Below, in pieces: positions 16,297 to 48,076 of a stretch of 64,000 bases of DNA. A model generated the notes under the pieces. The model was not told the DNA's origin. It did not search any database and saw only the letters and a program-made list of their open reading frames with translations. The stretch is from Epithemia pelagica. Its lineage: Eukaryota; Protista; Bacillariophyta. Position 1 is the first letter of the stretch. Each line of letters starts with the position of its first letter. The position numbers were made by a program, and so were the translations under genes. The DNA lies in the NCBI GenBank assembly GCA_946965045.2, contig OX337237.1, positions 2,728,001-2,792,000 of the forward strand. The letters are read 5' to 3'.

Positions 16297-19038
16297 CAAC
16301 AATCATACTAGTGCAAAATGTACAAACCGCTTCCTAATGATAAGCCTATTTTATGTTACCACCACCACTGCTGCTTGTGGTCGTTGTTATAGGAGATTGT
16401 TGCATTCAGCCGAGACGAGGAGTTCATTGTTGAGTTTGGCCCCGTTGTCGTGGCACCGGATTGTCTCTTTCAGCCAAACCAAGGAGTTGATTGTTGCGCT
16501 TGTTGTAGAACCGTAGAACTGAGAGAGACAGAGATGGAGAGCAGCTGGTGATTGGTGTGTTTGTTGTCATTGTCATTATCGTGGCCCCGAAGTGTTTCAC
16601 TCGGCCGAACCAACCAGTTGATTGTTATGATGGGGACATGCACTGCCACGCGAGGCCAAAACCAATTGGTTACATGTACTTGGTTGTGTCTGTGGTCATG
16701 GTTGTGGGTGTCGTATCATCATCACCATCCGATGGCTCGGTCGTTGTGGTTGTTGGTTTTGTCGTCGTGATTCTCCATCCTGTTCTGGTTGTGGCGACAT
16801 CGGCCGAGGAGGCTGCCAAAAAGTGAAGGGAAGTCTCCCTCCATTGTTGCACCATAACACTACCTTTCAGTTGTTTATTGTTGTGTTCTTAGGTCCAGTA
16901 CAACCTCGCTGTTGTTGTTGTTGTTGTTTCCATCTGTGGTCCTGTCTTGGTCGTTGTCGCCGCTCATCAACTTGTCGAACCAAACAGTTTGCCGCTCCCA
17001 AGGCTCTTCGACCAAGGCCACCACAGCTCCACGGCGTCCACTCCTTCTTCTTCCTCTCGAACTCTGTTGTCGGAAGCAGCCGCACCACGGGCATCACCAT
17101 CCTTGATGGCAGTAGAAGCCCCTTCGACCCACGGTTGACACTTGTTTTGTTAGGACTAGTCAGGCTTTTGTTGCGTTAGAACCACCAACGGACGAGGCGC
17201 GCATTTGTTGTGTTCGGACCAATCGATGACGACGAGTTGATTGATGCGAGAAGAAAGATGCTGGATTCATTATATCGATTGCCATCCTCTTCTTTCCACG
17301 GTCACTTCCTTCGCTCCGGTTGCCAAAAATGGAAGGTCTTCCAAATCTTCCTGTAGCTCCACAGATTTTCACAGTTCATCCCTTCCCGTCCATTCCCTCA
17401 CGGTACACATGAAGATCAAGCTTCCTGGATGGTCGGCGGAGTGCTTGCACCTTTCGTTGGAGGTGCACACCGGCTTGAGTGTGCCATGGTGGTGTTATGC
17501 AGTGCAAAATGACCGTAATGCTCTTCCTACCAAGTTAGAATCACTATAGAAAAAACAGTGGAGGCCCTGAAAGCACGGATTACTGCGCGATGAACTTTCG
17601 TGCGGTGGAGCTCGTACTCCTTGCTACCCGCTCTCTACCTTTCTACGCATATCTGCATTGTACTCCCAGGGAGTACTGCCATTGTACTACTCCTTGTTTG
17701 CTGGTGTCTGTCGAAAGGTGTCCCAAACAATATACGGACTCCGGGGGCCGAAAAATTCCCCCACAGTTAGCCGTGCTTTTCATACTTGTACTCCATTGTC
17801 TATAGTTATCTGGGCCGGTGGTTTAGGAAACCACGGTCATGATACACAACATGGCAAACTCAAGCCGGTGTGCACCTCCAACTAAAGGTGCTAGCACTCG
17901 ACCACCACGGAGTCCTCAGAATCAAGTGTACTGTGACGGAATGAACGGGTGGCGATGGGTTGGCCATTTTGGTGGACCGAAGGCAAGGTTTTTAAGTCTT
18001 CCAAATCCTGGTGGGAAGGAAGCAACAAGATTACCAAGATTGGAGTCGGAGAATGATGTAATGAAGAAAGATTGCAATGAGGGACGACAATGGAAGCTCC
18101 TAAATGGATGGATGAGTCGTGGGAGAGCAGCGGCAAGGACACACGGCAATCAACTGGAGGATTCTCGTCTGAACAAAACAGTCGGCCGCAACAACGACAA
18201 CACCAACAACAGACTGTCTCTCAATGTTACGAGACCACAAGAACCCAGCAACAACCGGCCACCTTGTGGAAGTGAAGGGTCGAGTCCATCATCATGGCTG
18301 CAACAACCGCAACAACCTCAACCACAACAAAGACAGCGACTGATTTGTGGCACCACACGACGAGTTGGACGCGAAGTGAACCATTGTTTCCCAACGACGT
18401 GAAGCCCACGACCACAAAACCAACATCCACCACGACCATTCCATTGGATGGTACAAGACAATGGCACCAATGCATCATTCAACTACTCTAGACCTCCAAC
18501 AAAACCTAAATGCAACAATCCACTCCTCGTTTTGGCCACAACGACAACAACATCCAATGCAACAATCAAAAGCGGGAGGATCTTGACGACAAAACCAACA
18601 GCCACAGCGAGCGAGCCATCGGATGGTAATGATGATACGACACCCACAAACGTGACAACAGATACCACCAACCACACAACCAACTGGTTTTGGCCTCGCG
18701 TAGCATGCATGCCCCCATCGCAACAATCAACTCATCGTTTTGGCCGAACCAAACAATCCGGGGCCACGACAATGACAATGGCACCAAAAGCAACAATCAA
18801 CTGCTCTCCATCTCTGGTTCTTTCAGTTCCACAGTTCTACAACAAACACAACGATCAACGCCTTGTTTCGGCCGAACGAGACAATCCTGTGCCGCGACAA
18901 CGACAACAAATGCAACAACCAACTCCAAGTGAAACCATCACCTATACCCATGACAACAAGCAGCAGTGGTGGTGACTACATAATATAGGCTTATAATTAA
19001 TAAGTGGGTTGTATATTTTGCACTTGTATGATTGTTGT
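16297..19038. repeat. Long imperfect inverted repeat; arms ~16297-16800 and ~18560-19038
   Basis: CAACAATCATACTAGTGCAAAATGTACA... at 16297 is the reverse complement of ...TGTATATTTTGCACTTGTATGATTGTTG near 19038. The shared blocks CACCACCACTGCTGCTTG and CCATCCGATGGCTCG occur in inverted orientation. Confidence 0.8.
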
Positions 19039-19043
19039 AAATC

Positions 19044-19255
19044 TACTTTAATAGCCAGGTTGGGACGAGGAGGAGCTAGGGTGTGAGGAGTGGCTTAACT
19101 CCGAGAAGGGCAATAGCGACGAGGAGTGGACTGCCCCTGTGAGATCCGCGTAAGCGGATCGAGGGGGCAGTCCACGACGAGAAGCTATTGCCCGACGAGG
19201 AGTTAAGCCACGAGGAGCGCCCTGCGACGAGGAGTCCCCCGGGGCTATTAAAGTA
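19044..19255 (+). other. Rod-like nested hairpin (~212 nt) at the left end of element A
   Basis: Nested stems TACTTTAATAGC/GCTATTAAAGTA, GGGAC/GTCCC, GTGGCTTAACTCC/GGAGTTAAGCCAC, GGGCAATAGC/GCTATTGCCC, GTGGACTGCCCC/GGGGCAGTCCAC and GATCCGC-GTAA-GCGGATC, separated by purine-rich G..A loops. Confidence 0.95.
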
Positions 19256-20221
19256 TGTTAGCTTCCTTTGTCACGAGGAGTCGTGCGGGCGCACCCTAGG
19301 TAATTTTCGGTCTTCCTAAGTGATCGTTTATCTCTATCGATACTTAGTAATAGTTGGCCTATTTAGCTTTTTACATTCGCGCCGGTACAGTGTTAGTTAG
19401 GTATCTTGCTTGCGTGCTTGCGCACCTCATCCGATTGCTCGCGTTTCTCAATAAGCAACATACTGTCGTGCTTGCGCAACAAATCCGATGGCTCGCGTCT
19501 ATCAAATAGGTACATACGACAAGTCGTGTTGTTTACATAGGCGTGACACAGGAATACATAGGTAATGTCTATATATTACTTAGATCCCCCACCCCCCAAC
19601 GGACATTCCCACGATAATCTCTCACAGACGACACATTTTGTGCAACAACAATGCAACAACATGATGAGAAAAGGAAGACAACCGACCATGGTGACTCCTC
19701 CTCCTTCTGGTGGAGTTGCTCATGCTTCCAAACAGGTTGATTGTGGAGTCATAGACCTTTGCACCCCTCCTGATGTAATAGATCTTTGTAGTTCGTCTTC
19801 GTCGTCTAGTTGCTCATCAGACTCTTCGGGCGAAACTCTCGTCTTTGTCACCAAGGACAATGCAACAGACGAATGGGATGGCAATCTCTTTCGCCGCTCG
19901 GAACTCTACCACGACTGTACTGGGTCATCCGACGACTTCAGCACCTGTAGTTCCGACCCTTGGATCATGGAAATCCTACAGAGACGGTAAGTTTTCGCCG
20001 CGTTTCCCACCATTGTCGTGTGTTTTCGTTCCAGACGTCTTCCCAAAATTTCAAACCACCTGCCGTGCGCGCGCGCATGGTTGAGTCGCTGTTCTGTTTC
20101 CTACTGATTCCTACGTGTAACCTACGTGTCCGCACTTTCTCGCAAGTGTCACCGTCTTCACTTTCCTCACCCTCATTTTTCATTGTGCATCGTTTTTTCA
20201 TCGTCGTTTCACAGCCTGACC

Positions 20222-23200
20222 ATGGCGACTCGACAATCTCGCCGCCAACTGGAGCGGGCGGCCGCAAGAAACAATGTGGACGCCACAAACTCAACCAATA
20301 ACGTGAACCCGTACCGAAATCCCGGCCGCCCACCCAACAACCGTGCCAATCGTCCGCCATTAACGGAAGTGAACCTTCCTCCTTCCCGAAATCCTCGTCG
20401 ACAACCACAACAACAAGACAACATCCAAGCTACAGAGCAATCAAAGTAAGTGACAGTATGTTTTGTTTCTATTCTTATCTGTCTCATTCTAACCACCATG
20501 TTTCCTTTTTCCCTTCAGCAATGTTGCGAGGCCTGATCCTTCTTCCCGTCGTCACCAGATCGAAGGTCTCGATCTTCCCAATGGCGCCAACGACGCCCTT
20601 CTCAACGCCGCAACGGTTGTGGAATCTTGCAAAGTGGATACCAAGCTTGTATCCCAAGCTTTGGTCAAACGGAAGCATCTGACATGGGATGCCGAAAAGG
20701 GCTCCATGCGGATTGGTGAGGTCACCTTCAACCCGCCCACCATGAACTCTTCTCGTGCACGTTCGTTGGCCGCCTGGAGTCAATATTGTCGTCTGTCTCC
20801 AACCATATACGGCAACAACACCTTCACCATCCGTGACCTCACTGGATGCAAGGCGTCATACGACAAAGAAAAGGCCGCCTCCGTCAACAAATTTTTGGAG
20901 TGTCTTCAAAAGCATCACGAGATGCACTTTCTTCTTGAAATCGTCGAAGATATCGATGAACTGTCGGGTGGAGATACACCAACGCCGCTCCTCTTTCTTG
21001 CTCTCCGCGGAGTGAAGACTCCATCGAAATTGACATTGTTGAATAGTTGCGTAATGGTTTTTCTCGTGAACCATCGAATGCGGGGTTTCAATATGGAAAC
21101 GGATTCGGTGGAGGACCCCAAGTTTTTCTTCCAGCCCAACACAACAATGAAGATGCTGAACCATCTCTTTGCTCTTCTTAAAACACACGGGATCGTGATC
21201 GCTCAAAGTGATCTCAAACATGGGCTTGGCAATTACCATGCCTACCTTGCCGACATTTGGAACAAGGCAGCCCTCGTCCGACCCGAATTTGGCCGCCTAC
21301 CCAATCGTGCACCAACGGCATTCGACGACGAAGAAAAGATGCGGACATGCGAGCCGGAGCTTCGGCCGTTCGAAGACGGCGAGTATTCCACGGCTTTGAG
21401 CATGGGAGTCTACAAGACTTCCCGAGACTTCGGTCTCCGCGGCCCAGAAGTAAGTTGTTGTTTGTTGTTGTTGTATTTGTTGATTGTCGCCGTTGTTGTT
21501 GCTGCTGTTGTCTAACAGTTTGGTTGTTGCATGTTGTCTCCAGATAAGACTACTTAAAGTATCCGATTTAATTTTCAAGGCGTGTCTTGACAAATCGTAC
21601 GGAATGTTGGCTGGGCTTCCCGCGATTATTCTCAAAGAATCTGTGCTTGAGAAATCGTCGCACCTCGCGACGAACAATCTCGCCTTTGATCGAGTCGCCA
21701 ACGATACACAAGACTCGTCGCACATGATCATCGACAACCCAGATGATAAGTTTGCGACGTACAAGATCCTCTTGCACATCATGAAAGTGGCGCACCCGCC
21801 AGGATGGCAGGGTCTGCTGTTTCTAGAGCAGATACCCGCAAAACACCTCAAGGCCCGCAAGGATGGTGCGAAGCACCTCGGTTGGACTGAGCTCGTCCCC
21901 GAGACTTCACAGAATGACGCGGATGGATCTGGCTTCAAGTGTGCGGGTAGATTGGGCGTGAACTGGCCGTTGAGGAATGCCCGTCAACTTGCCATTCGTT
22001 GCAAGTTTGACAACGCCGAGAAGGTGACGTTCCGGACCGGCCGACGCACCGGAATCTCGAACGTTGCCAACTGTGGAGTACCACAGAAGTCGTCGAACTC
22101 CTTCGCCCGTCACAAGTCAAGTGAGGTCAACGTACTGTACCAGGACGTCTCGAAAGAAAATCATGTTCGGACCGTCACGGCCAACTGGTACCGTCCACCC
22201 GAAAAGAGCGACGAGGCCGACAAAGAAAACACGAAGAATGGTACGTAGACTCATTGCATGAATCACTCTTTATACTTTGTTACTAACTACTCTGCTATTA
22301 TGTTTAGATGAGGAGGGATCCAAGAAGAAAGAGTCAAAAACCGCTTCATCCCCCTCGTCCTCGTCGTCGTCCTCCACCGACATTGAGGCCTTTATGAAAA
22401 AGGCCAAGAAGAAGATTCGCCGTCGCAAGGCGTTGCAGCAGCTCAAGGCTGCCAAGAAACAGAATGACGATTCGTCCATCGAAGACGAGGATTCATTGGC
22501 GCGAATCCTTCGTCTCTTGGACGAAAAACCATCCAAGTCGTCCAAGTCGCAAACCCATGGTAAGTTGATTGTTGCTTTGTTGTTTTCTTGGTTGCATCGA
22601 TCTCATTCCGTCTTCTCTTGACCACAGACACCAAATCCAAGAAAAAACGCAAGAAGAAGAAGAAGAAGAAGAGTAAGTCGATCGCGGACTCATCATCATC
22701 GTCATCTTCATCGGATGGCATGCTTGAAGTTCTTTCCCGATGTCAAAAGAAAAAGAAAACTTCTCCGCCCTCTACCATCGTTGGTACGTAGATTGTTTTG
22801 TTTTGTTTTGTTTGATTGTTGCTTTATATGTTCTCACTGCCATTCCCTGTTTCATCACCTTCGTCCACTCCAGTGGCTTCTTCAAAGCCTCCTCCACCAC
22901 CTCCAGTCGAGCATGAAGCGCCACAACCGCCACCACCAGTCGTTGTACCACCACCACCACCAACAACAACAACCACGGTGGCCGTGCAACCACCACCAGC
23001 TACGTCAACAATGGACCAACATGCACCACCTCCAAACAGTGCAACAGTCCAAGCACCAACAACAACCACCGTAACAGCCATGAAACAACCTCCACTGCCA
23101 TCTACTGTTACGGCCACGCATCCACACCCAACAGCAACGACTGAGCAACAGCCACCACCACCACCACCACCAACCATTGCGACCACGGAACCAACGGTAT

Positions 23201-23715
23201 CCGCTGCAGCTCCACCAGCCATTGCGACCACATCAACGTCGCAACCACCTCCACCACCACCAACCATTGCAACCACGGAACTGCCACCACCACCCACAAA
23301 TGTGCCATCGTCAACGGCCCTTGTTCCGACGGAACACCACACCAGCCACCACAATCCCTCTCAGAATCATCACGGTGGATATCATCGCAATGACGGTAGT
23401 CGAGACCGCGGGGTTGATTGTCGTGTGGAGGAGCACCATCGTGTTGCTTATCATCGCAACAACTGGTACTCCCCACCTCCACCACCATCCGACTCGCCGC
23501 CATATCATCCTCATCATCATTCCCACCACCATTCTTCCCGAGGATACCACCACCGCCCGTACACTCCATCGCCACCACCCCCACCGTACTACCGTGACCA
23601 CATCCACCACCGTGGTGGTGGATACACTCCACCACCTCCACATCATCATCATCATCACCATCATCGTGGTTCGCGTTACCATGGCGGTAGCCATGGATAC
23701 GGCTACCACTATTGA
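20222..23715 (+). CDS. Tyrosine recombinase (Crypton-like) with a long low-complexity C-terminal tail, ~1033 aa, 6 exons
   Basis: Exons 20222-20445, 20519-21449, 21544-22240, 22308-22559, 22628-22783 and 22874-23715; all introns are GT..AG and phase-compatible (3102 nt). YR motifs FGLRGPE|IRLL..SD (Arg), EKSSH (Lys), FRTGRRTG (HxxR-like) and ARHKS...VLY (His, with Tyr at 22138). Confidence 0.8.
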
Positions 23716-24388
23716 AGTACCATAGTATTCGGTACGTTTGCTGTTGTTGTTGCATTCTTGTTGATTGCTGTATCATTGTTCTTACCCCTTTATTCACTCT
23801 TTTTGACAGATTGATGTCGCTATTGCTCTTTGCATGACCATTTGGGTGGTGGTCTCTAGCTTGACGTCTCGAAAGGTACGTGAGAATTAGATGATGACAC
23901 TTGTTCCGCGTTCCACTCCACGTTACGTACCAGTTTCTCACACGTTCACGATTTTTGTAATTCTGTCTTGGCATGAAATTTCGTGGTGCATCTCTTTGCT
24001 ACTGAATTTTCCGTGTCGTGTGAAAACTCGTCTGTGTCGTGTTTCAATTATTGCCTACATTTTGATTATTGTTTTTTGGTCTCTGTGTTTCCGTTGCTGT
24101 TGCTGGTGCTTGCTGCTTGATTCGTGTGGTGTTTGTTTGTTGTGCTCTTCTTTTTTCCGTTGGGTGCACCTCTTGTTCGCTTTGTGCTCTTTCCCGTATT
24201 CTCTCCCTGTGGATTTCCTGGGTGTACTACTTTTCTGGGTGTACTACTTTCCTGGGTGTACTACTTTTTCATTTTGGGCTATTCTAATTTTATACACTAA
24301 AATAAAAATCCAAGTACAGTAATTTTTAGGGCTTATGTAGTGTGGGTAGCGTTTTGGGAAAGGTACGACGACGAGTGGTGAAGGTAGT

Positions 24389-25396
24389 AAATCTACTTTA
24401 ATAGCTGAGGGTGGACGAGGAGGAGCTAGGGTGTGAGGAGTGGCTTAACTCCGAGAAGGGCAATAGCGACGAGGAGTGGACTGCCCCTGTGAGATCCGCG
24501 TAAGCGGATCGAGGGGGCAGTCCACGACGAGAAGCTATTGCCCGACGAGGAGTTAAGCCACGAGGAGCGCCCTGCGACGAGGAGTCCCACGGGGCTATTA
24601 AAGTATGTTAGCTTCCTTTGTCACAAGGAGTCGTGCCAGCGCACGCTAGGTAATTTTCAGTCTTCCTAAGTGATCGGCTCTCTCCTTCGATACTTAGGAG
24701 TCGAGAGCCAAATTATTATTATACAATTACGCTGACCCAACTTTTGATAGGGCACTAGGTAATCTTTAATTGTTTGTAAATAGCCATGTCACTTAAGTGA
24801 TCACATCCGATTACATCGGATGAATAATAACGGTTTATGCTTAAGTAACATTTGTCTTACATTTTTTGGAAGGCCAATCAAACTCCGAGGCGTGCCTCGT
24901 TTTTAAATAAGACAACAGAATACTTACGAGTAGAGTCAATGAATGTCCCCCATTACCCCCACGCCTCTTCTCTCCTTTCCCGTTCCCGACCCGACCCGAC
25001 CACGACCACTGAATAAACGACACAAACACAACAACAATGGGAAAGCTGACCAAGGTGAGTCCTCCTTCTCCGGGAGGATGGAGGATGTATCCATAATCCA
25101 TCCACCAACAAAAGCTCTACCAACTCCCAACTCACAATGATGGTGGATTGTTGCGAATTGCGAACCTCTGTCCATTGTCCATTCCTGGCCGTCTTTTGGT
25201 TTGTTTTTCGTTTCGGTGTTTGGGTGGTGCTACTTTTTGTTTCTTTTCCCGGGCTATTTTGCATGATTACACTAGAATAAAAAATCTACGTACAGTAATT
25301 TTAGGGGCTTAGGTAGTGTGAGTGTGGGGAGTGACTTACTCCTCAGTGAGTCCTCAGTGAGTGGGGAAGGGTAGGACGACGAGTGGTAAAGGTAGT
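24389..25396 (+). mobile_element. Non-autonomous copy 'B' (1008 bp) of the YR element, head-to-tail after A
   Basis: Same left end and hairpin (24394-24605) and same right end (...GACGACGAGTGGTAAAGGTAGT), with no long ORF. Collinear with the copy at 35877-37464. Confidence 0.85.
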
Positions 25397-25585
25397 ATTA
25401 ATACTTCCCGGTGTCGAGTCCTTTCAAGGAGGGACCGCCCGGCGCGGAGGGTAGAATGACGAGGAGGGCAATGGTCGAGGAGGGCGCACGCCCGACAAGA
25501 CAATTGCCCGTCGAGTCATTCTCCCGACAAGCCGGGCGCGCCCGACGCGAGAGGACGGCCAGACACAGGGAAGTAGTAAACTTAC
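25397..25585 (+). other. Divergent rod-like hairpin 'C', probably the left end of a related element
   Basis: Stems TTAATACTTCCC/GGGAAGTAGTAA, GTGTC/GACAC, GTCCT/AGGAC, CGCCCGGC/GCCGGGCG, GGGTAGAATGAC/GTCATTCTCCC, GGGCAAT/ATTGCCC and GGGC-GCAC-GCCC, with GAGGA/GACAA loops. It starts immediately after B's GTAGT end. Confidence 0.8.
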
Positions 25586-26370: not shown

Positions 26371-26769
26371 CCAGTTCGTGATGTATGAAGGATCAAAAGG
26401 AACCAGGATGGGCCAGCAGACAAAACAAGTCTGGTAACGAGTCCTACAAAAGTGTGTTTTAATATCCGAACTTGCATGGATTCTTTACGCATGGCTGCAT
26501 GCTCGGGGGACAAATCACTCATGGAATTTGTACAATACTTGTTACTACGATGGACTTTTACGGCAACGACGACGCAAAGCAACACCATTGACGAGAGATG
26601 TCTGAGTGTACAGGGGATACGGATACCACAAAAAGTCGGTGTTGTGTCAGTTGGTCATTGATAGTTTTTTCGAATGCCGAGCAGAGCTTGGGTTTGGGTG
26701 GTGTGTCGTTGTGTTGGCGTTTGAGGAGGCGCTCGCTTTGAGGGAGTTCGAAACGGTTTTAATGACCGT

Positions 26770-35629: not shown

Positions 35630-35876
35630 CCGAACCCGGATGTTAGATATGTGATGTGAACGGAACATTGCGAATTTTTCTCCCATCATCTGTTGTTTCG
35701 TCGCTACCAAGAAATGTTCTGAAGTTCTTAGGAATGGTCGACACAACCAAAGCCCAGTTATGTGATTCCATCCACTGGTCTGAGAATCGTGGCATCACTT
35801 GAACAAGGATAGGAGGCGCATGGTGCATTTCTCTGTTTTTGGGCGCATGGTGGTGGTGTCATGGTATGGGTCTTGG
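35630..35876 (+). pseudogene. Decayed paralog of the threonine aldolase upstream/5' region; continues at 37465-37651 and 43833-43950
   Basis: Aligns with 45845-46075 (CCCGGATGTT.AGATATGTGATGTGAA, GGAATGGTCGACACAACCAAAGCCCA). Collinearity resumes after each TE insertion. Confidence 0.8.
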
Positions 35877-37464
35877 ACTACCTTTATCACTCGTCGTTCT
35901 ACCGTCGTCGTGCCCTTCCCCACTCACTGAGGAGTGGGTCACTCCCCACACTCACACTACCTAAGCCCCAAAAGTTACTGTACATGGATATTTCATTTTA
36001 GTGTAGTAATCTAGAATAGCCCGGGAAACGAAAAAGTAGGTGTTGGTTGTTGGTGCTGTGTTGTGTCTTGTGTTGTTGTATCAGTCGGAGTGGGAAATGG
36101 GGAACATTGACTATAAGTATTCTGTTGGAGTATTTAAAGAACAAGCACGCCTCGGAGTTTGATTGGCATGCGATAAATGTGGGACAAATGATACTTAGAC
36201 ATTGAGCGTTATAAGTCATCCGATATAGTTGTATGTAATCCCTTAAGTGACCAGGTTATTTACAAAGGATTAAAGATTACCTAGTGCGCCATCATGAGTA
36301 TGGCCAGCGTAAGTCTCTAAGACTAATTAGGCTCACGAGTACTAAGTATACATTAAGTGTACCGATCACTTAGGAAGACCGATAAATACCTAGAGCACGC
36401 TGGCATGACTCCTCGTGACAAAGGAAGCTAACATACTTTAATAGCCCCTGGGGACTCCTCGTCGCAGGGCGCTCCTCGTGGCTTAACTCCTCGTCGGGCA
36501 ATAGCTTCTCGTCGTGGACTGCCCCCTCGATCCGCTTACGCGGATCTCACAGGGGCAGTCCACTCCTCGTCGCTATTGCCCTTCTCGGAGTTAAGCCACT
36601 CCTCACACCCTAGCTCCTCCTCGTCCCACCCTGGCTATTAACGCCATACGTAAGGAACGCGTTTTAAGCCTAACGGATTAGCAAATAAACTACTCCCATA
36701 AAACTTTAGCGATATATGGTTTGTGTCCCATAAACTGCTCCCATCTTAACACGGTTTGAAAACTCCCAGTTTTAATTTCGAGTACAAATTTATTCATAGT
36801 GAGAATTTTTTGTCATTTTAGTCGCTTTTCTCGAACTTGAGCGGCCATCCGCGATGACCATGAGAGACAATGAGGGCGGACAATGAAAATGGCATGGATC
36901 ATCTTCCAATGATGCCAAACCAGGTCAGAATGGATGAAGGAAAGTCAATTGATCAAGACAGATGGTATGTGGAGGCGAAAGTTGACCAAGGAAAGGTTCA
37001 ATGTGTCGAAAAAGGGTCAATGCTGTGAAGCAGGCAAAAACATGGTCTGAGAGAGGGAATTGCCGAATGCTCAACAGAGGTGCTGTCAAATCACAAATAA
37101 AGACAAAGTCCTATAGTTCATATTATTTTACACCAGAATGGAAGGTCTTGACATTTGCTGTTGGAAATTGAGTGTGTGCGTACTGCTCAAAGTTGGGCCA
37201 TGGTCGATGGGATGAGAAAATCACAAAAATCATCCAAGTTTTGATACACGAAACGACTGTTATAATTTCAAAATCAGTGTAGACTATGATATATGAAAAT
37301 GTTCAAAATTCCACAAACTATTAGAATTACAAGTGAAAAAGACAATGACGTCTATATTCCAACTAGTAGATGTCTTCAAAGTTATGGGAGGAGTGTATAT
37401 ACTGCTCGAATTTATGGGATCAGTATATATACTGCTCCCTTACGTATGGCGTTAAAGTAGATTT
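35877..37464 (-). mobile_element. Non-autonomous copy of the YR element (~774 bp net), interrupted by a MITE
   Basis: The reverse complement has the same left end (AAATCTACTTTAA|TAGCC), the same hairpin (36434-36641) and the same right end (...GACGAGTGATAAAGGTAGT). Confidence 0.88.
36642..37451. mobile_element. 810-bp MITE with 14-bp TIRs and a TTAA duplication
   Basis: Perfect TIR CGCCATACGTAAGG at both ends, flanked by TTAA (36638-36641, 37452-37455). Removing it restores GGCTATTAAAGTAG, as in copies A and B. Subterminal TCCCATAAA repeats. Confidence 0.9.
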
Positions 37465-37948
37465 ACAACGTCCGGCTTCATGTTATAAAAGCATCTTGCA
37501 TCTCTACTCGACCGTGGAGATTTAGAGGTGTCATTGCATGTTCTGGACTGTCCATACCACAGCCGTAGCTGTGCTTCCTTGTTCATCAACACATATTGGA
37601 AAGCAGCGCTGGGGGAGAATGTTTTGACAGCCCGACTGTCGAGGACCAACGATAACAAATTACGCGTGTGATACCAAGTGAAAAACTAAAATAGTGAGCA
37701 TTAAGCTATGCGTCCCTCATGGGTTAGCTACTCGCCCAAAACTCGCTTAATATCAGTCGCCTTTCTTGGTCCCCTCACAATTGCTATGTCGGACCATCAC
37801 GATATAGTCACATTTTGCCAAATTCAGAATATCACATCAACATATATCTTCTTCCATCTCCTCCATACCTGCTTCTGAGCGCCCCTGTGTGGCGTGCAGG
37901 ACGTACCCAGTCCCCTTGGTCGGGCGGGAAACGTACTCCGGGGTTGAA

Positions 37949-40900
37949 TTAGAACAGAATCATTTGTGCCAACCTTGTTCGTTCCGGACCAGTCTGAATC
38001 TTAGTAAGCAAGTCCGCTAGATTCGTCTTGGAAGGCTCAAACGCAATCTTGCATGTCCCATTGGCAACGTTCTCACGTACAAAGTGATACGCAACTGAAT
38101 TGGACTTCTTGCGCAATGTCGACTCTGGTAAGGAACTGTTGTAGACGACCGACATGTTGTCTACTCTCACGTGTGCATGTCCGTCCAAAGGAATGTCCAT
38201 CATTCTCAATTTGTACCGTAATCCTTTCAGCATCTCCACACCAACCTTGAGAGCCATAAATTCAGAACCAAAAGTCTAAGTTTCGACACTGGTTTGCTTC
38301 TTGCTGTACCATGAGATCGGTGCTCTATTCAAATAGATAAGCACTCCTGTTCTGGATCGTCGTGTCAAGAGATCACCTGCATGGTCAGAGTCGACAAAGA
38401 CCGTCATCTGGACAGCCTTGCCTAAAGGTTCGGGTGCATCTGGAGGTACTTCTTCCGTGGCTCCAGGATAGAAGCCTGACCAGTCGCTTGTCGGTTCATC
38501 TCCAAGTTCAATATACGACAGGTCCATGATCAATCGTGAACGCTCATGTAGCTTGAGGTATGCAAAGAGGTGCAGCATTGCCTCCACATGACCTTCTCTG
38601 GGGCCGGCTAAAAATCCAGCCAACATTGAAACCTCTGCAGCGATGTCAATGCGTCCCAATTCAACTAGCCAACGGAGTACGCCCATCTGCTGCTGGTAGA
38701 ATGACATTAATTCAGGATCACAATATGGGGTTGTGTCCAACTCAGGACGATAGCCACTGGGCAAGACACTTGGAGCTCGCGTTTTCAGTTTACGATCTCG
38801 GTCTTCCAGCCATGATACAACATTTGTTATGGCAGCCTTTGCATATTTCTCTGAACTCAACGCCCAACATCGCTGTGAAGCGTCGTTATTGATATCAAAT
38901 GTTTGTACCTGGGATCCCAAATAATACTTCGGAACGCCAATCGAATCCGGTTTCAGTAAGTAATGGTGATCCAGCATTGTGAGCGACTCCTTTGGTTTGT
39001 GAGAGATGATCAATATATCGTCTGTATAGACGAATAGCATTTCATAATAACGCTCTCCATTGCCTTTTGTCGCTTTCCTCAAATAGCAGTCAGGATCAGC
39101 ACGGCATGGGAAATAGCCCAAGTCTTCTTGTAGGGTCGTGGACAGGAGATCACGCCACGCGTAGGCGCTAGTCTTTAGGCCGTAGAGTGCCTTTGTTATA
39201 ATCGCAATCCGACCTTGGTACTCGGTGCCGAATTCTAAACCACACCTTGTGCAGACCTTTTCAAGGCATGGAGCATTAAGATATGCACCAGCAATATCAG
39301 CCGCTTGAATCTCCAATCCATTTAGAGCCGCTAGCATAAATCCAATACGCACACTTTCACGACTGACGACGCTTGCGTATGTAGGCGCCTCAGGCTCTTC
39401 AGTTTTGTGTCCTCCGGCCACATATCTGGCCTTTCGGGTGAAATCCATCTTGACATCAAAGACGATGTGACAAGGGATTAGCTGATACCCCACTGGTTCA
39501 TTTACGCCGTCGTCCAAGATATTGACAGCAGGAAAAATCTTCGACATCTCCAGTTTCAAAGCTTTTCGCCAATAGTCCGTGCCATATCTTGTCATCTTGG
39601 CGGCTTTGATCAGCCTCGTTCTCCTTCGGAGGGTGAATGGTACCCACCATGCGAATGCTGGTTGTTTCTCGATCTTGTTCGCAACCGCATACTCAGCGAC
39701 TTCAATTGGATACGACTCCTTGAGATCCTTCAAGGCTTCCCAACTTGAAGAGCCATCTTTCCATTGCACGCATAAGGACCATCCTCTAGTGGTCTTCTTC
39801 TTATGCTTGCGACCATTCAATTCGAATTCTCCCTCTGAGAGAGGAACAGCCGTTTTATCAGACTTGTGATCTGTGATCTCTTCAACCATTCGATATAGAT
39901 TGCCCTCATCATCGAGCTGTTCGTAAATATTTTCAGCTATAATGTTGGCAGCATAGGATTGCACATGGCCATCATCGAATTCGACTTCGTAAAGTGTTGT
40001 GTCCAAGTATGGATTGGACGATGCGTGTCCGAGGACTCGACCTTCCGCGTCTCGTTTCCGTCTCCGAACAGTCCCCTTTCGTTGATCATCACCTAGGGGC
40101 AACATGACTTTTGCAGAGATGAGTTTATCGTATGCATCTGGTGCATAATCATCTGCTTCCGGCATGCGTACGTCCGGCTGTTCGTCGTCTTCATAGGCTT
40201 CGAACGTGGGTGTATCCGCATCATGGTCATCATCTGCATCGATCAGAATACCCGCCATTCTGTCACCAAGGGCCGCTTGTAAATTTTCCATATATGTGGT
40301 TTGTTGTGCTTTGTGAGCATCATCCATTTGTAGATCTCTGTTGATTGGCCAGACAGAAGTGCGGTGTACGATCTTGCCCTTTTCGGTCAGGACTTTTGCG
40401 CACATTGCCTGGCCCACAGTATGACTTGGACCCAACCAGCGTCCGAGTTTACGTCCCTCAAAACCAGGGTTACTATACCACACAAAATCGAACCATCGAT
40501 GCTCCACCAAATGGGAAATGTCTGGAGTATCTCCAGTGAGTTGCTGAATGGGCGGACCGTTGACATTACTTCCAAAGCTCGTATGGGAGCGTCGCTCCGC
40601 CATCAGCATGAGACAGTGGTCCCAGAGTACTGCTGGCGCATTGCTGCGTCTCATTTCTCTGCGGTAGAGGCGCTTTAATTCTCTAATATTGGCCTCAGCC
40701 AGGTTTTGGTTGGGCGTCCATGCTTCCACTGGTTTTATCCGGCACCCGTACTTGTGGGCTACCTTCCGAAATTCTTGCGAGGTTAGTTCTGGTGCATTGT
40801 CTGGAATAATATGGTTGAAGATGCCATAGCTGTCAAAGACAGCTGGCAACGTTGTCGGTGCTTCACTTTTCTTTCTCATAGGGATAAAATGCACCCAACC

Positions 40901-41851
40901 AAAGTCCGTAGCGAATATTTGCCCGCATGTATTTTGATAAAGAGACTTGGTCTCTGAGAACAGAGTGTCAGTGTACACATCTGCTCGTAATCGACGATGT
41001 CGCAATTGGTATGCGGTATGTTTCAAACGTCGACTGCCGCCTCGATCGGTGAATTCACGGACACCAAGTTGTGTCGTCTGATTGAACGTCCGTTCTGCAC
41101 TGGGGAGTCCAATATTCCATCGTTGTGCCAATTCATTCGGACGTACTGTCCCCTTTCGCCTATGTCCAATGTCTGAGACGTGGACATGGATGGCGCGATT
41201 GTTGACTCGGAGAGTCTTGGTCATTGCGAGATTGATCGTCCGCTCACGTGTTGCATTTACTACGTTCGATTGTATCGATTCCCTGAGTGTTCTTTCATCA
41301 ACATCTGGTGTTGAGTCATTCGGTTGCCACTCGGGTCGTTCATTCGTCATATCAATACGACAGGAAGGATCGATTGAATCAATCTCCTCCTTCGTGGGCT
41401 TGCGTGTGCGAAATTGGCTTAAGACACCGATTAGGTCGAGAGGGATTCGCAATTCTTCCATTTCTGTATCCCTTGCAATGATGCTGTGGGATCTTTCATT
41501 TCGGTCCCCTGGTTTCAAGTACTTCAAGGGGATATCATTAACTTCAATCCCGGCCTCCCGCATTTGATTCGGATTAAGAAGGCACTTGTCTTTTAATTGC
41601 GGCAAGTGTAGCGCTTGGTGGAAATAAAGGAGGAACGTTTGGCCAGTCTCTGGATCATCATATGCCAAAACACCAGTGATGACGCTGGCCTCTTTAATCT
41701 TACCCAGACTCTCAACAAAACCACTGACATCAGCCGTATCAGTCTGATACAGCACGTAACAGTTGCCCAGACAGCAAGTGTCGGCATGACTGTCGAGCTC
41801 ACACCGGATTAAGGGAACCGAAATCTCACGAGAAGTTGTTGCAGACATCAC
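37949..41851 (-). pseudogene. Copia pol (protease, integrase, chromo-like segment, RT, RNase H) with a premature stop
   Basis: Motifs ELDSHADTCC, YTDTLF / PDNAPEL / NQNLAE, DVKMDFTRKARYVAGGH, DIAGAYLNA, VYTDD and DSDHAGD. An in-frame TAG at 38276-38278 interrupts SVET*TFGSEF. Confidence 0.9.
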
Positions 41852-41857
41852 ATTGTG

Positions 41858-43273
41858 TCAAACACTTCTCTTCTTACGTTGGCTCATGATAGCGCCGACA
41901 CCCTTTGTGTCGTTATCATGACCATCAGACGATTGATCCGAAATGTCGGGTGTTTTGTCTCCATTGGTACGCGGTTTCTTGTTGGATTTGCTTGAGATTG
42001 CTCCAACTCCACGCCTCTTGTCACGCTTCTCTCTTGCGTCTCGTACCCTTTGACGCTCTTCTCCGCTTAACTTAGCCCATTCATTGGGTTTATAATAGCG
42101 ATCAGTGACTTCTCTCTCTTTCTTCGTTTCATTCTTCTTTCCACTTCCTTTATTCTGTTTAGAAGTCGATACTCCAGAGATTCTTGCTTGTTTCCTACTT
42201 GCTGCGCTGTAGGATACCTTGCTGTCTAATACTTCTGCAAGGAAATTAGATGCGTTCTCGAAGGTTGAACGTAAGAATGGCGTCGCCAAGATTTGGTTCT
42301 TAGCGCTTTCAAGCCGAGAATCTGAGGTACCAGTCATCAAGATTCTAACCTTTCTTTCCTCACTGACGTTTTCGCCTGTGGATTCGAGATCCGTAAAGGC
42401 ACGTTGCAATGTTTCGATATATCGTTCATATGTGAAGTTGCGCTTGGAACCGTCAAAGTAGGTGCTTTCCAAGATCTGATCGGCTTTGGCTCGGAGACGA
42501 GACTGAAAGACGTCACCTAGGTAGTGCGTCTTAAGGGCCAAGTATGCAGCACGTCCATTGCGGGTGCGGGCGAAGGACATCACCCATCCCCAGCCAGGAC
42601 CGTCATGAGTGATATGTCGGATTACTTCCCATACGGCAACCATGTCAGTGGTTGCTGTAGGGCCTTGATGCGATGCGCGCCGAATCATTTCAGCTAAAAT
42701 AGTTGGGGTGCCAAACCCATTTGGATCTGTCGTTTCCGGTTGGACGTCGGGATTTTCTCTCACATAGGCAGCAAGGGGAATTCCAGTTGCTCCACGCTTG
42801 CGCTCCAAATAGTTATCCAAATCTTCAAGAACAACTCGAATATTATCAACGCTGCTGAGTTTCGCAGGTAGTTCAACTTCGTTATCATACTCGTCTTCAG
42901 CTTCTTTGAACCGATACAACAGGGTCAAGTCATTCATCCTAGGTGGAACTGCAGCGAAGGTGCGATTGATTTTCCCAATGTGAACGATGTAGTAACGGAG
43001 CATCTTGAGTTTCTTTTCAACCAGGTGCCCGATGAGGACTCCTGGATTAGCTATCATTGCTGGTACTCCAGCCGGATCAGGGTTGGGGATGAGGCCACCA
43101 GGTTTACGAGCGTTGGTACAAATTTCGGCGACGTCTGCCTCGCTGAGGGCTTCAAAGTCATAGACGGAGGTTAGGCCTTGACCATTGAGAGCAGTACGAA
43201 CTGCTGGATCGTTAATCTGCAGGACGACATCCAGATACACGTTCAGTAGTTGCATAGGATTCGGTGCTGCCAT
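41858..43273 (-). CDS. Copia gag
   Basis: 471-aa ORF downstream of the 5' LTR, with NGRAAYLALKTHYLG, YFDGSKRNFTYERY and RYYKPNEWAKLS as in diatom Copia Gag; in frame with pol. Confidence 0.85.
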   Translation of the reverse strand: MAAPNPMQLLNVYLDVVLQINDPAVRTALNGQGLTSVYDFEALSEADVAEICTNARKPGGLIPNPDPAGVPAMIANPGVLIGHLVEKKLKMLRYYIVHIGKINRTFAAVPPRMNDLTLLYRFKEAEDEYDNEVELPAKLSSVDNIRVVLEDLDNYLERKRGATGIPLAAYVRENPDVQPETTDPNGFGTPTILAEMIRRASHQGPTATTDMVAVWEVIRHITHDGPGWGWVMSFARTRNGRAAYLALKTHYLGDVFQSRLRAKADQILESTYFDGSKRNFTYERYIETLQRAFTDLESTGENVSEERKVRILMTGTSDSRLESAKNQILATPFLRSTFENASNFLAEVLDSKVSYSAASRKQARISGVSTSKQNKGSGKKNETKKEREVTDRYYKPNEWAKLSGEERQRVRDAREKRDKRRGVGAISSKSNKKPRTNGDKTPDISDQSSDGHDNDTKGVGAIMSQRKKRSV

Positions 43274-46258
43274 GGTTGCGATAGTTCTTCTTTTTCGGAC
43301 TTGTTCGGACTTTCCAGCGAAGTGAGCTTCATTAGTTTTGGGGGAATTTCCACGTCATGGTCTGAATTCTACTTGCGAGCGAGCGGTAGAATCGGAGTTG
43401 GAGTGCTTGCATAAGGTGCTAGGACGGCGCACGCCATTTAAGTAATGAACATGTCCGTATAGCGGCATCCTTCAACGGCAGGATGTGCGGCGCGTCCGCC
43501 ATTGCCCAGTGTGTGCGCATACGCTGACCACACACCACAATCATCCATCTCGAGCCCCGTTGCAGGCGAGATATTAGTGAGATGAAAGGGAGTACAGGTA
43601 TCCAACCTAGGGCAGTCATTCTTCCAAGCGAATGATCTAGATATTTCGCGACCTTCCCAGGCCATGGTAGTGTAACATCTCCTTCATCGGTTGATGCATT
43701 TGGGTCTGATAAACCAAATTACGCGTGTGATACCAAGTGAAAAACTAAAATAGTGAGCATTAAGCTATGCGTCCCTCATGGGTTAGCTACTCGCCCAAAA
43801 CTCGCTTAATATCAGTCGCCTTTCTTGATAACGATGGGTAGGAGCACCACCAACAACCACCCAAGAACCTAAAGAAGCTTTCCCTTGTCACGGCCGCTGG
43901 TGGTGCCATAAACGCTCTTTCCTCGTCGTCCTTCGGTTGGTTCTCACCCACGGAATTGAAACAATACTTGTTGCTACGAGGGAGTTTTACGGCAACAACG
44001 ACGCAAAGCAACACCATTTATTAGAAATGTCTGAATGTACAGGGTATACGGATGCCACGAAAAATTCGGTGTTGTATCAGTTGGTTATGGATGTTGTTGC
44101 AGTTTTTCAAATGCTGAGCGGATCTAGGGCGTTGTCAGAACTCAATCTGAAAGACGATCGAACGACATGGAAGACGATGCCTTGAAACCGTGTTTCACGT
44201 GTGTCCTCTCTGGGAAGCTCGTGACTGGGCAAGATCAATTTGCTTTGAGAAAACTTTCTCCGCCGAAGGCACCCAACTCGATGTATCAGGGGACCCAAGA
44301 AATGCGACTGGTGTGGTTCAACAAGGAGAAAACGAAATTTATGTTATGCGCCTCCTGCCTCCTGCCAGCCCCACCAAAAACATGAATAAAGTGAAGTGAA
44401 CATCAAACCTCAACACTTGATTAGAACGACCATTCGGAAATGCAACATGGAACTGAATACTCGTATTCGTAGGGTCTGGTTTCTGGTTTACGCGTTCCGC
44501 TCTCCTTTCTGAAAATCTCTTGACAAAAGACAAGAGTCAAATTCCCTCTTCTTTGGGGGATCTTCGGGTCGTTGCGTTGTTCGAATTCGCAATCTCTCGA
44601 CTACTTTGCCTTTGACTTCTTGGATTCCCTTACTCCTCGACCCTCGACATGGTAAACCTTGGGTTTCTGGTTGACATCTTGTCGTCCGTTGTGGTTAACC
44701 CAGGAACTCGCCATAGCCGAGCCGAACCGCTTGTTGATCTTCGGTGAAACTTACCAATCAAACGGTCCCGTGTCCCTTGCCCCCTCCATTCTCGGTAACG
44801 AATTGATCTTCAACTATACAATTGCTGATGAGCCATGCATAGCGCATACAGATTTTGTATTCATTGGGCATGAGCAAAACTCAAAGCAAACAGGGGTAGG
44901 GGATGTGAATTACTTCAAGCAAGATTCCCAGAGGCCAATCGCATTCTCATCACGGCAGCCAAGCCATGAACCGCCATGTATGCATACAGGCTTATGCTCT
45001 TCTTGACAAGGGTTGTCTTGATTTGTGGGGAATCATTGCATAAATCCAAAAACAAGGATTCTTTTTCGTATTCTCTTGAATTGATCTCTAATCTCGACGC
45101 AGAAGATGGTTCGTTTTGTTTGGTTCCCCCTCATGATGGTCCTTTGGCTTGGTGACGGCTTGGACCCTGACATGGTCCCGGACTCTCTGCGAGTTGCGTC
45201 TGCGAAAAAAGATTGGTCCGTGGGTCGGAACGCTGATAAAGTGGACCAAGAACTCGAGGAAGACAAAGTACTTTCCGCTCAGGCGACAAGCCAAGCCCTT
45301 CGTGGATCAGAACCGCTTGTGCATGAACCAAGCAGCAGTGACACAAAAGTCTGGAAGCGTCCAAAGATTGTTGTGGCAGCGGGAGTTGTCAGGAAGACCA
45401 ACTCTATCAGGAATGTCGGACACAGGGAATTGCCGGGCAAGCCGAAGGCGGCCAAGAAGGCGGCCAAGAAGGCGGCAGCGGCGAAAGCAGCTGGTACCAT
45501 GGCAGTCAAAAAAGCAGAACCAGTCATGAAGGCTGCTCCTGCTCCGTGAGAATTCAGGCAGTTCAGATAGTTACGACTTTTTATCCAATGATATGATGAC
45601 TGACTAAAGCGGAGAGGTATAATCTTCTGCCCTGGACGGCGAAAAAAAGACCAGAAGAAAGAAAGATAGTGTCCTGACAATCGTCATGCTTTGTTTCGAG
45701 CATTTCATGGTAGTTCCATTGCATAGCACCATTTCAACGATCCACCTTTCGTTTTTGAATACTGAACCTCTAGCACATACATCCGGCGATTCTCTACCTA
45801 CAATTAGATAGGTCATAAGATGCGGAGAGGGAATGAGCACAGAACCCGGACCCGGATGTTCAGATATGTGATGTGAATGTGAACGGAGTTTATTCTCGTC
45901 GCTGCCAAAAGTTCATGTTGGAAGTTTTGGAATGGTCGACACAACCAAAGCCCATTTATGTTATTCCATCCACTGGTCTGAGAATAGCGGCATCAAGAGA
46001 ACAAGGGTAGTAGGCGCATGGTGCATCTCCCTGTCTATCGCCTCATGGTGGTGGCGTCATGGTATGGTTGTTGGACAACGTCCGGCTTCCCGCTCTACAA
46101 GCATCTATGATAGACCTCGAAGCTTTCGACGTGTCATTGCATGTTTGTTCTGGACTTCCCATGCCACAGCGCTAGCTGTGTTTCCTTGTTCATCAACAAT
46201 TACGGGAAAGCAGCGCTGGGGGAGATTGTTTCGACAACCCGACTGCCGAGGACAAGCG

Positions 46259-48076
46259 ATGGGTAGGAGCACTACAACCACACCTAGTGCAAGAACCTGG
46301 AGAAGATCTCCCCTTGTCGTGGCCGCTGGTGGTACCATAAACGCACCCTCCTTCTCGAGTTGGTTTTCCTTGTCGTCTCTGCTTCAAGATCCACAGGCCC
46401 GACCGTCTCATCCCGAAGAGGTCTTGCAGCAATTGGCCGAGTACGTTCACGATCTGCGTCAAACTCATGGAGAAGAAGTGCAATGGGATGTCTATGGAGA
46501 TTTTCTGGGCTACGGAGGCGTATCATCCAATCTGACGAATGGTACGACTACAACAATGACACCATCATTTTTGCGTCGTTTTGAACAAGAATTGGCCGAG
46601 GAACTGGGTATGGAGGATGCCGTTTTTATGCCCTCCGGTGTCATGGCACAATCCATTGCTCTGCTGATTCATCGAGACAATCACCCGTTGTTTAAGATGC
46701 AAGACAGTATCAAGGACAATCAAGTTGATAGTAATGACAAGGACCACATGACATCTGCATCACACTGGTCGTTTCGTCCTGCTCGCTTCCTGTGTCATGA
46801 ATCCAGTCACTTGCTGTTGCACGAACAAGATGGATATCGGCACTTGTTGCACATGGAGCCGGTAGTGGTTTCCACCAAATACGACTCCACCGTGCAAGAC
46901 ACGAACGGGCCTTTGGGAGCTACATTTTCTTCGATTCCACCCCTGTCGACATTACGTGTTCAAGAGACGTGGGAACAGCTTCCACCAACCAACGACTCAG
47001 ACAGCAACAACGACCACGGCCCCCTGATTGCCATGATTGTAGAACTTCCACATCGAGAGTTGGGTGGCAAAACAACATCATGGGAAGACTTGGTACAATT
47101 GCAAGACTTTTGCCATTCTCATGACATGGCCTTTCATTGCGATGGTGCTCGCCTTTTGGAAGCCACAGCGGCCTACGATAACAAGGACAATGCGACGGAT
47201 GCGACCGCGACATTGCGAAAACTCACGTCCCTTTTTGATTCCGTGTACTTGTCATGTTACAAGGGTATGGGTGGATCCTTGTCGGGTGGTGTCTTGTTAG
47301 GAACCACCCAATTTTGTGCCAGTGCACGAATCTGGTTGCGACGGTTTGGTGGGAATTTGTACACCTTGTTGCCCATGGTCGTGGCGGCCCGAAAAGGATA
47401 CGAACAAGAATGGAGACAACCATTGCTATCACAGCAGCAGAAAGAACAGCAACATCCAGAAGAACAACGATACAGTGGTAATCCGGACGATACGACATTC
47501 CTATCACGGCCAAGGCTCTTGTCCTTTCGCGACAAGAAGGATAAATTGGTTCGATTGGTAGGGCAGTTGCAATCGCAACCCAGCCTTGCGAACATATTGG
47601 CCTTTGATCCACCAGTACCAGAAACGAATATGGTCCATGTATATCTCCGGAATTGTACGTTGGAGCGCTGTCAAACGGTTGCAGATCAGACACATATTAC
47701 AGTAGAACTTTCCACTGACAAGGAAGACAGGGACAGCCACACGTCGAACGGCGGTGATGATTCACACATTGTCCAGTGGTGGGTGGAATCCAAGGGAGAC
47801 CCAACGACCACTTTAGGTTCGCCAACGTCAAACTCTACCAGACGTGTTTCCTTTCCCTTGATTCGACGATTGCGAGCAGTCGATCCACTGCAACATCCAC
47901 GTGCGGTAGAGCAGGGATATACGGTCATGTTTGAATGGACCATGGGACAAGCCAATGGACAAGTCGATGATGCGATTTACGTGGAGGCCTGGCGACAGTT
48001 TGGTCTACATCTGTCTGTAGCCTCGATTGAGACAACCAATCCAGTCGACGATACCGACTCGACCGACAGCCTGTGA
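46259..48076 (+). CDS. Low-specificity L-threonine aldolase (PLP, beta-eliminating lyase family)
   Basis: Motifs DVYG, AVFMPSGVMAQSIAL, SHLLLHEQDGY, VELPHRELGG, HCDGARLLEA, SCYKGMGG (PLP Lys) and LRRFGGNL. The ORF is open from 45932 and the true start is uncertain. Confidence 0.88.
   Translation: MGRSTTTTPSARTWRRSPLVVAAGGTINAPSFSSWFSLSSLLQDPQARPSHPEEVLQQLAEYVHDLRQTHGEEVQWDVYGDFLGYGGVSSNLTNGTTTTMTPSFLRRFEQELAEELGMEDAVFMPSGVMAQSIALLIHRDNHPLFKMQDSIKDNQVDSNDKDHMTSASHWSFRPARFLCHESSHLLLHEQDGYRHLLHMEPVVVSTKYDSTVQDTNGPLGATFSSIPPLSTLRVQETWEQLPPTNDSDSNNDHGPLIAMIVELPHRELGGKTTSWEDLVQLQDFCHSHDMAFHCDGARLLEATAAYDNKDNATDATATLRKLTSLFDSVYLSCYKGMGGSLSGGVLLGTTQFCASARIWLRRFGGNLYTLLPMVVAARKGYEQEWRQPLLSQQQKEQQHPEEQRYSGNPDDTTFLSRPRLLSFRDKKDKLVRLVGQLQSQPSLANILAFDPPVPETNMVHVYLRNCTLERCQTVADQTHITVELSTDKEDRDSHTSNGGDDSHIVQWWVESKGDPTTTLGSPTSNSTRRVSFPLIRRLRAVDPLQHPRAVEQGYTVMFEWTMGQANGQVDDAIYVEAWRQFGLHLSVASIETTNPVDDTDSTDSL

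Follow-up and report, generated by a model that had tools for sequence, protein, structure and literature searches.

The window analysed here, a stretch of 64,000 nt from the diatom Epithemia pelagica (assembly GCA_946965045.2, contig OX337237.1, positions 2,728,001-2,792,000), contains an insertion, hereafter element B, which is probably a non-autonomous member of a diatom family of Crypton-type DNA transposons. The mover would be the divergent tyrosine recombinase encoded by a related autonomous element of the same window, element A, acting on a core formed by the joined ends of the element and on chromosomal targets of the form GTNG-N4-CNAC.

The site occupied by B can be compared directly with an empty copy of the same host sequence. 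A paralogous stretch at 45926-46260 matches the flanks of B with 78-86% identity (repeat families and flank alignment), and against this paralog B appears as 1588 bp inserted precisely between 46075 and 46076, with 0 bases duplicated or lost and a boundary ambiguous by 1 nt, a G common to both sides. The empty paralog reads GTTG-TTGGA-CAAC on the plus strand (46067-46079). On the minus strand, which is the strand of the element, the left junction reads GTTG/TAAAT-CTAC (37469..37457) and the right junction GGTAG/TCCAA (35882..35873), where the slash marks the limit of the insertion; the termini of B are thus TAAAT-CTAC at the 5' end and GGTAG at the 3' end. The empty paralog has this GTTG too, which assigns it to the target. 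Element A shows the same left flank, GTTG/T, at 19034-19038. The initial annotation of this region had proposed a recombinase-type insertion without a true target-site duplication (TSD). All of the sequence letters that it quoted, for the empty site, for both junctions and for the flank of A, are present; the exactness of the insertion relative to the paralog bears out the absence of a TSD, and a tyrosine recombinase is indeed encoded by the autonomous relative A.

Two neighbouring insertions serve as controls for this absence. B itself is interrupted by an 810-bp non-coding element with terminal inverted repeats (TIRs), located 14 nt from its 5' end and splitting the first 14 nt of B from the remainder. 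The nested element is flanked by a TTAA duplication, where a single TTAA is found at the same position in A, in the related unit S described below and in five further loci (L001-L005). Duplication of TTAA is a hallmark of piggyBac-like elements; neither the window nor any of the 16 loci considered below contains a second copy of the 810-bp element. At 190 bp from B, a Ty1/copia retrotransposon (about 37654-43830, minus strand, with a Pfam RVT_2 match in the open reading frame (ORF) 38276-41851) has identical short long terminal repeats (LTRs, about 115 bp) and a 5-bp duplication. Since the TTAA and 5-bp duplications are detectable at this very locus, the lack of a duplication around B is not an artefact of the divergence between paralogs.

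A single target says little about specificity. In the filled copy of B the far arm reads GACC versus CAAC in the paralog, so that the 4+5+4 palindrome is confined to the paralog, and a lone palindrome of this kind is within chance expectation (about 1/256 per position). The preference for the half-site becomes overwhelming because 14 further insertions could be added. The 16 loci considered were collected from one ENA assembly by exact look-ups of cluster members; they belong, together with A and B, to three sister families (Table 1). Family A has the ends 5' TAAAT-CTAC and 3' GGTAG, family 3 has 5' TAGTT-CTAC and 3' GGTAG, and family 5 has 5' TAATA-TTAC and 3' GGTCG. L002, L006 and L014 represent the identical insertion and were counted once, and the flank statistics are column counts of host DNA. 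Copies of one family at unrelated loci are 98.3-99.8% identical, a sign of recent activity.

Table 1. Host sequences flanking the insertions, read on the element strand (right flank: first nine bases)
Family	Insertion	Left flank	Right flank
A	B	GTTG	TCCAAGACC
A	A-array	GTTG	next unit
A	L001	GTCG	CAGCCGACT
A	L004	GTCG	TGGGCGACC
A	L005	GTTG	ACGAAAACA
3	L002	GTCG	TCGCCGACT
3	L003	GTAG	ATCTCTACC
3	L007	GTTG	ATCACTACA
3	L008	GTAG	CCGACTACC
3	L009	GTAG	TAACCTACC
3	L010	GTAG	without motif; 3' terminus deviates from family
3	L013	GTCG	TCAACTACT
5	L011	GTGG	CACACAACA
5	L012	GTTG	TCGTATACA
5	L015	GTGG	TGCTCGACC
5	L016	none (5'-truncated copy)	TCCTCAACA

The left flank is GTNG at all 15 sites, with all four bases represented at position 3, and resembles the 3' end of the element itself (GTAG or GTCG). 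Such a preference cannot be chance, given an expectation of about 0.014 per site from base composition. On the right side, CNAC is found at positions +5 to +8 in 11 of the 15 sites and AC at +7 and +8 in 14 of them. Position 3 of the left arm is complementary to position +6 in 7 of the 13 sites checked, for about 3 expected, and several targets have inverted arms of 5 bp. The target is a small palindrome, GTNG-N4-CNAC, that resembles the joined ends of the element. The initial annotation had predicted a half-site preference, which the flanks of the further copies confirm, and a logo GTWG-N5-CWAC, of which the half-site stands and the exact form does not: position 3 accepts any base, and the inverted arm follows after 4 nt. 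The GTAG left flanks of family 3 were also considered as the ends of neighbouring units. This reading was rejected, as no second palindrome-bearing unit is present there, and these flanks were counted as genuine targets.

The junctions are as regular as the targets. Each family has its own constant 5-nt spacer at the left end of the element (TAAAT, TAGTT or TAATA), as seen at 15 of 15 left junctions. At every one of the 15 sites, the left junction combines the third base of the target with the spacer of the element, and the right junction combines the tetranucleotide of the element with the spacer of the target; the reciprocal arrangement was found at 0 of these sites. In 10 of the 15 cases element and target have different third bases in the tetranucleotide, and this base was never exchanged. 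The crossover is bounded by position 3 of GTNG on one side and the initial base of the spacer on the other. The earlier proposal of a crossover at the edge of a non-homologous spacer can be made more precise: it is the left edge, and element and target do have non-homologous spacers.

The recombinase is the sole recognisable and conserved gene in A, and the sole gene conserved across the three families. Its two exons (Table 2) were queried separately in the protein searches. Relatives of about 50% identity in L002 and L003 have an intron at the equivalent position, and more distant ones (P0023, P0045 and P0017) are single ORFs colinear with both exons; on these grounds the gene of A is intact. 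The family is rare, since an exhaustive profile search retrieved only 135 representatives; a word-indexed protein search with an alignment of 37 sequences retrieved only 2 proteins. Among the 37 aligned relatives, two Arg residues are invariant and the His and Tyr residues nearly so. Exon 2 of the window keeps Arg, His and Tyr, and the box-I Arg would be located at the end of exon 1. When PDB was searched with a profile, XerA and an integrase came out on top, both aligned on the R..H..Y box (E about 0.05), and a phmmer search of PDB with exon 2 returned nothing. The AlphaFold model of the relative P0023 (predicted local distance difference test, pLDDT, 79) has Cre, the Tn1549 integrase, FLP, QRICH1, lambda Int and Xer as its top Foldseek matches (E about 0.02). 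Pfam Phage_integrase was matched weakly by 4 of the 37 relatives (best E 7e-4) and DUF3504, weakly as well, by 1 of 37 (E 0.012). The Pfam scan of the ORFs of A (at least about 110 amino acids, both strands) gave no match, and in particular no reverse transcriptase (RT), RNase H, DDE or HUH/Rep domain. Each of these tests is marginal when taken singly, but they agree: because of the concordant matches and the conserved catalytic residues, the protein of A is best described as a divergent tyrosine recombinase.

A long low-complexity tract is found downstream of the recombinase exons in all families (22262-23722 in the window, 8700-9260 in L002 and 10690-11170 in L003). It is Pro/Thr/His-rich in one frame, with CAA-type repeats, and tails of a similar kind are fused to the recombinase in some distant relatives (P0074 and P0017). 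A further exon in this tract is possible.

Element A, of which copies 98-99% identical are found at other loci (L001 and L004), is followed in the window by smaller units. The first 310 nt of A are matched at 95% identity in unit S, whose 3' end also resembles that of A, and B is 81-87% identical to S across most of its length; by these shared ends and this 5' identity, S and B are non-autonomous relatives of A. A and S, together with unit X, which has no homolog among the 16 loci, and a very short unit starting at 25578, form a head-to-tail array of at least four units at 19038-25609. The junctions between units have the donor-type core expected of joined ends. Indeed, the pattern GTAG-TANNN-NTAC has 3 matches in the window, for 0.17 expected, and all are inside the array. 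The arrangement of A and S mimics the split direct repeats of Ngaro-type elements.

Table 2. Positions of the features discussed in the text (window coordinates)
Feature	Position	Strand	Remarks
Element A, autonomous, Crypton-like, 5350 bp	19038..24387	+	Ends as in B
Subterminal imperfect palindrome of A	19090..19211	+	CGAGGAG-type direct repeats
Recombinase exon 1	20493..21449	+	Open frame, ends in candidate box-I Arg motif
Recombinase intron, 94 nt	21450..21543	+	GT..AG, phase 0; position as in family 3 (L002, L003)
Recombinase exon 2	21544..22248	+	R..R-H..Y catalytic box and Tyr nucleophile
Donor-type core GTAG-N5-CTAC, junction of A and S	24384..24396	+	Equals the putative circle junction
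Unit S, non-autonomous, 1008 bp	24388..25395	+	B homolog, head-to-tail with A
Palindrome equivalent in S	24440-24561		
Further donor-type core	25392-25404	+	
Unit X, 182-bp mini-unit	25396..25577	+	Further related family; donor-type junction on each side
Further donor-type core	25573-25585	+	
Host paralog segment left of B	35728..35877	+	Homologous to 45926-46075, 86% identity
Target right flank TCCA-AGAC-C	35869..35877	- (element strand)	4-nt spacer and partial inverted arm
Element B, non-autonomous, Crypton-like, 1588 bp	35878..37465	-	Length includes the nested insertion; ends common with A
Palindrome equivalent in B	36478-36599		
Nested non-coding TIR element, 810 bp	36642..37451	.	Inside B; 14-bp perfect inverted ends, TTAA duplication
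Target left half-site GTTG	37466..37469	- (element strand)	In both filled and empty copy
Host paralog segment right of B	37466..37653	+	Homologous to 46076-46260; ends at copia insertion
Paralogous empty site	46067..46079	.	Inside ORF 45932-48076

A candidate cis-acting module is the palindrome of about 122 bp located about 50 nt from the 5' end of the elements. Its conservation between families is about 80%, although their proteins are only about 50% identical and the rest of their DNA cannot be aligned. Four of its stem pairs show compensatory double changes and are unbroken in every copy, and as single-stranded DNA it would fold with -47.7 kcal/mol (z = -12.9). Superimposed on the palindrome are about nine direct heptamers of the CGAGGAG type, mostly 15-18 nt apart; CGAGGAG is found 33 times in the window for 6.2 expected, and 19 of these 33 occurrences are in the elements. 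One could guess that the palindrome is an accessory binding array. In L001 (6850-6971, compared with 19090-19211 of the window), a copy otherwise 98% identical, the inner part of the palindrome is exactly inverted in a flip/flop manner, and one outer bubble has been converted so that it pairs with the opposite strand of the stem. Either recombination of one arm with the other or copying on a hairpin template is suggested by this change. When JGI metagenome contigs were scanned for exact matches to the core of the palindrome, none was found.

These observations can be assembled into the following reaction. The joined 3' end (GGTAG) and 5' end (TAAAT-CTAC) would constitute the recombinase core, with imperfect inverted arms and a 5-nt spacer. 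This core would be carried by a circular intermediate, its joint being the one seen at the tandem junctions, and would recombine with the chromosomal look-alikes GTNG-N4-CNAC. With a crossover directly 3' of GTNG, the left arm of the target would join the spacer of the element, and the left arm of the element would join the spacer of the target. S and B would be mobilised in trans by the recombinase of A. As the left junction of an integrated copy is near-identical to the donor core, insertion next to resident copies is predicted, and the four-unit array is consistent with this prediction.

Several points weigh against this interpretation. The spacer is 5 nt long in the donor cores versus 4 nt in the targets, a difference for which the reaction does not account. 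The assignment of the recombinase is marginal at the sequence level (Pfam E 7e-4, PDB about 0.05, Foldseek about 0.02), and the modelled protein, P0023, is a relative only 31-38% identical to that of the window. Joined-end junctions are seen solely in tandem arrays. The sole empty site is a paralog of about 86% identity and not an allele, and the whole sample amounts to 15 independent sites in one assembly.

The way in which strands are exchanged is where the possible explanations diverge. The best fit, to be held tentatively, is that the recombinase exchanges one strand pair only and that the junction is completed by replication or host enzymes; it is favoured because of the invariant polarity of the junctions, and the unequal spacers point likewise. 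Single-strand exchange resolved by replication had been named as an option in the initial annotation, and in this respect the earlier proposal stays viable. A rather unlikely extension of this idea would define a previously undescribed lineage of eukaryotic tyrosine-recombinase transposons, in which a one-sided, single ordered exchange occurs at the GTNG arm without a second recombinase-mediated exchange, and in which the conserved palindrome, studded with iterons, able to form a hairpin and able to flip, serves recombination or replication as an accessory or folded-DNA site. If true, such a one-sided reaction would explain both the 5-nt and 4-nt spacers and the invariant polarity. Slightly less probable than the exchange of one strand pair, and doubtful in its own right, is the classical Crypton model (Goodwin), in which both strands are exchanged within a sequence common to circle and target, here GTNG, and the flanking direct repeat is microhomology. 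The left flank does mirror the element's 3' GTAG or GTCG at 15 of 15 sites, and Cryptons have been described with flanking direct repeats of 4-6 bp that represent target microhomology (PMC3212892, PMC13465315). However, with position 3 mismatched in 10 of the 15 sites and never exchanged, no more than one or two phosphodiester bonds would be available for both exchanges. The stagger of known tyrosine recombinases is, in contrast, 6-8 nt.

The remaining explanations fare less well. A reaction of the Tn916/Tn1549 type, in which staggered cuts flank a heterologous spacer, the joint is a heteroduplex and coupling sequences are brought along from the previous site, had been suggested by the initial annotation. 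It would account for the non-homology of the element and target spacers, and the Tn1549 integrase is among the best structural matches. It predicts variable spacers, and the segregation of a heteroduplex predicts both types of junction; the spacer is instead constant by family at 15 of 15 junctions, the reciprocal arrangement was never seen, and donor and target spacers differ in length (5 nt and 4 nt). Since neither prediction is observed, this mechanism is improbable, and the coupling sequences of the earlier proposal are not supported. A retroelement of the DIRS/Ngaro/PAT type, with A and S as split direct repeats (A1..B1A2..B2), B as a solo derivative and integration by the recombinase of the retrotransposon, is suggested by the repeats themselves, as 19038-19347 equals 24388-24697 (95%) and 24253-24387 resembles 25221-25395. 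However, none of the frames contains an RT or RNase H domain; the copies L001, L004 and L005 stop at the first GGTAG, without A2-B2, and two more units follow in the window, as in a tandem array and not a split repeat, which makes this origin very improbable. Hardly credible, finally, is a single-strand or rolling-circle insertion of the HUH type 3' of the tetranucleotide, using subterminal hairpins as in IS200/IS605 or Helitrons and with the recombinase as a passenger. It would share several features with the elements: insertion is oriented, follows a fixed tetranucleotide on its 3' side and involves neither a TSD nor TIRs, and there is a strongly folding subterminal palindrome (z = -12.9) with a flip/flop variant in one copy. 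Against it, no HUH or Rep domain was found, the target is dyad-symmetric and resembles the joint of the ends, as expected for a dimer-binding recombinase, and the recombinase is the only gene conserved across the three families.

The host sequence interrupted by B belongs to a small group of related gene copies. The ORF 45932-48076 is threonine-aldolase-like, with a match to Pfam Beta_elim_lyase, and diatoms are the source of all of its nearest named homologs. Three diverged paralogs of this gene (77-86% identity) are found within 22 kb, at 25797-26588, 35728-44063 and 45926-48076, and only the third has an uninterrupted ORF. The copy that contains B has received two independent insertions, B and the copia element, and one nested insertion. 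The array of A was considered as an occupant of the matching site of the paralog at 25797-26588; this was rejected, as homology to the empty paralog begins only at 25797. The aldolase-like protein (P0152) is recorded on a contig of 775,818 bp and the recombinase exon on one of 2,059,682 bp. These different contigs may correspond to a second haplotype or to a duplicate region, where allelic empty sites could be present.

Of all classes of eukaryotic DNA transposons, Cryptons are the one least understood, and it is usually difficult to tell where they end and which targets they use. The three sister families of one diatom genome provide unambiguous ends and a clear target rule, GTNG-N4-CNAC. They also include non-autonomous partners and tandem arrays, and they have a core of joined ends mimicking the target as well as a conserved palindrome that acts in cis. 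The Crypton recombination model thus becomes testable from sequence alone, through the polarity of junctions, the fate of spacers and empty alleles. Annotators gain a signature for such elements in diatoms, one of which interrupts a threonine-aldolase-like gene copy.

In the broad sense of a eukaryotic DNA transposon moved by a tyrosine recombinase, the element agrees with the definition of a Crypton on every testable point. Its recombinase has the Arg..Arg..His/Trp..Tyr set, the Pfam scan of the ORFs of A revealed no RT and no other transposase, and there are no TIRs, LTRs or true TSD, the GTNG flank matching the GTAG/GTCG 3' end. As in the described Cryptons (Goodwin et al. 2003; Kojima and Jurka 2011, PMC3212892), the tyrosine recombinase is the sole enzyme and RT, TIRs and LTRs are lacking; a short sequence is common to one element end and the target, without a true TSD, the elements are few in copy number, an intron interrupts the gene and non-autonomous derivatives occur. 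Cryptons are further characterised by excision as an extrachromosomal circle; here the joined ends are seen at tandem junctions only. Insertion without a TSD at a short microhomology is the described hallmark of Cryptons (PMC3212892, PMC13465315), a point absent from the initial annotation. TSD-less insertion by a recombinase is thus already known, and it is the exact target rule and the conserved hairpin region that are new. Unlike those Cryptons, the shared tetranucleotide is imperfect here, the target is a palindrome-like site of 12-14 bp, the families have in common a conserved subterminal palindrome of roughly 130 bp with phased direct repeats, and tandem arrays are present. The families do not belong to CryptonA, because their recombinase is not recognised by DUF3504 (1 of 37 relatives, E 0.012) and QRICH1 appears only as a fold match. 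CryptonS elements, from stramenopiles, have terminal direct repeats of 5-6 bp, mostly TATGG, and a conserved C-terminal region. Compared by termini alone, the present elements differ both from most CryptonS, with TATGG, and from the one diatom Crypton, listed with CTGTAAG.

Resemblances extend to other systems based on tyrosine recombinases. With the integrases of Tn916 and Tn1549 the elements share recombination across non-homologous spacers and loosely defined targets, the structural similarity being concordant but statistically marginal. The coupling sequence of Tn916-type elements is carried from site to site and is variable, whereas here the spacer belongs to the element and is unchanged between sites, with a single arrangement of junctions. 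The DIRS, Ngaro and PAT elements have in common with the present ones a tyrosine recombinase and TSD-less insertion, and the pair of A and S resembles their split direct repeats. Unlike them, the elements have no RT or RNase H, and the split-repeat appearance results from tandem insertion, without counterpart in the other copies. Starships differ as well, since no DUF3435 match is found and the element, of 5.35 kb, has no cargo, and so do Helitrons and elements of the IS200-IS605 and IS91 types, no HUH Rep endonuclease having been found here. Parallels in outcome, as analogies only, are the integron attC x attI reaction and the CTX-phage/XerCD system, two cases of one-strand exchange completed by replication, in which the crossover is likewise fixed at one arm, homology of the spacer is not needed and polarity is invariant. 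These systems, however, use folded single-stranded substrates, whereas the core of the diatom elements is the joint of their ends and not a hairpin.

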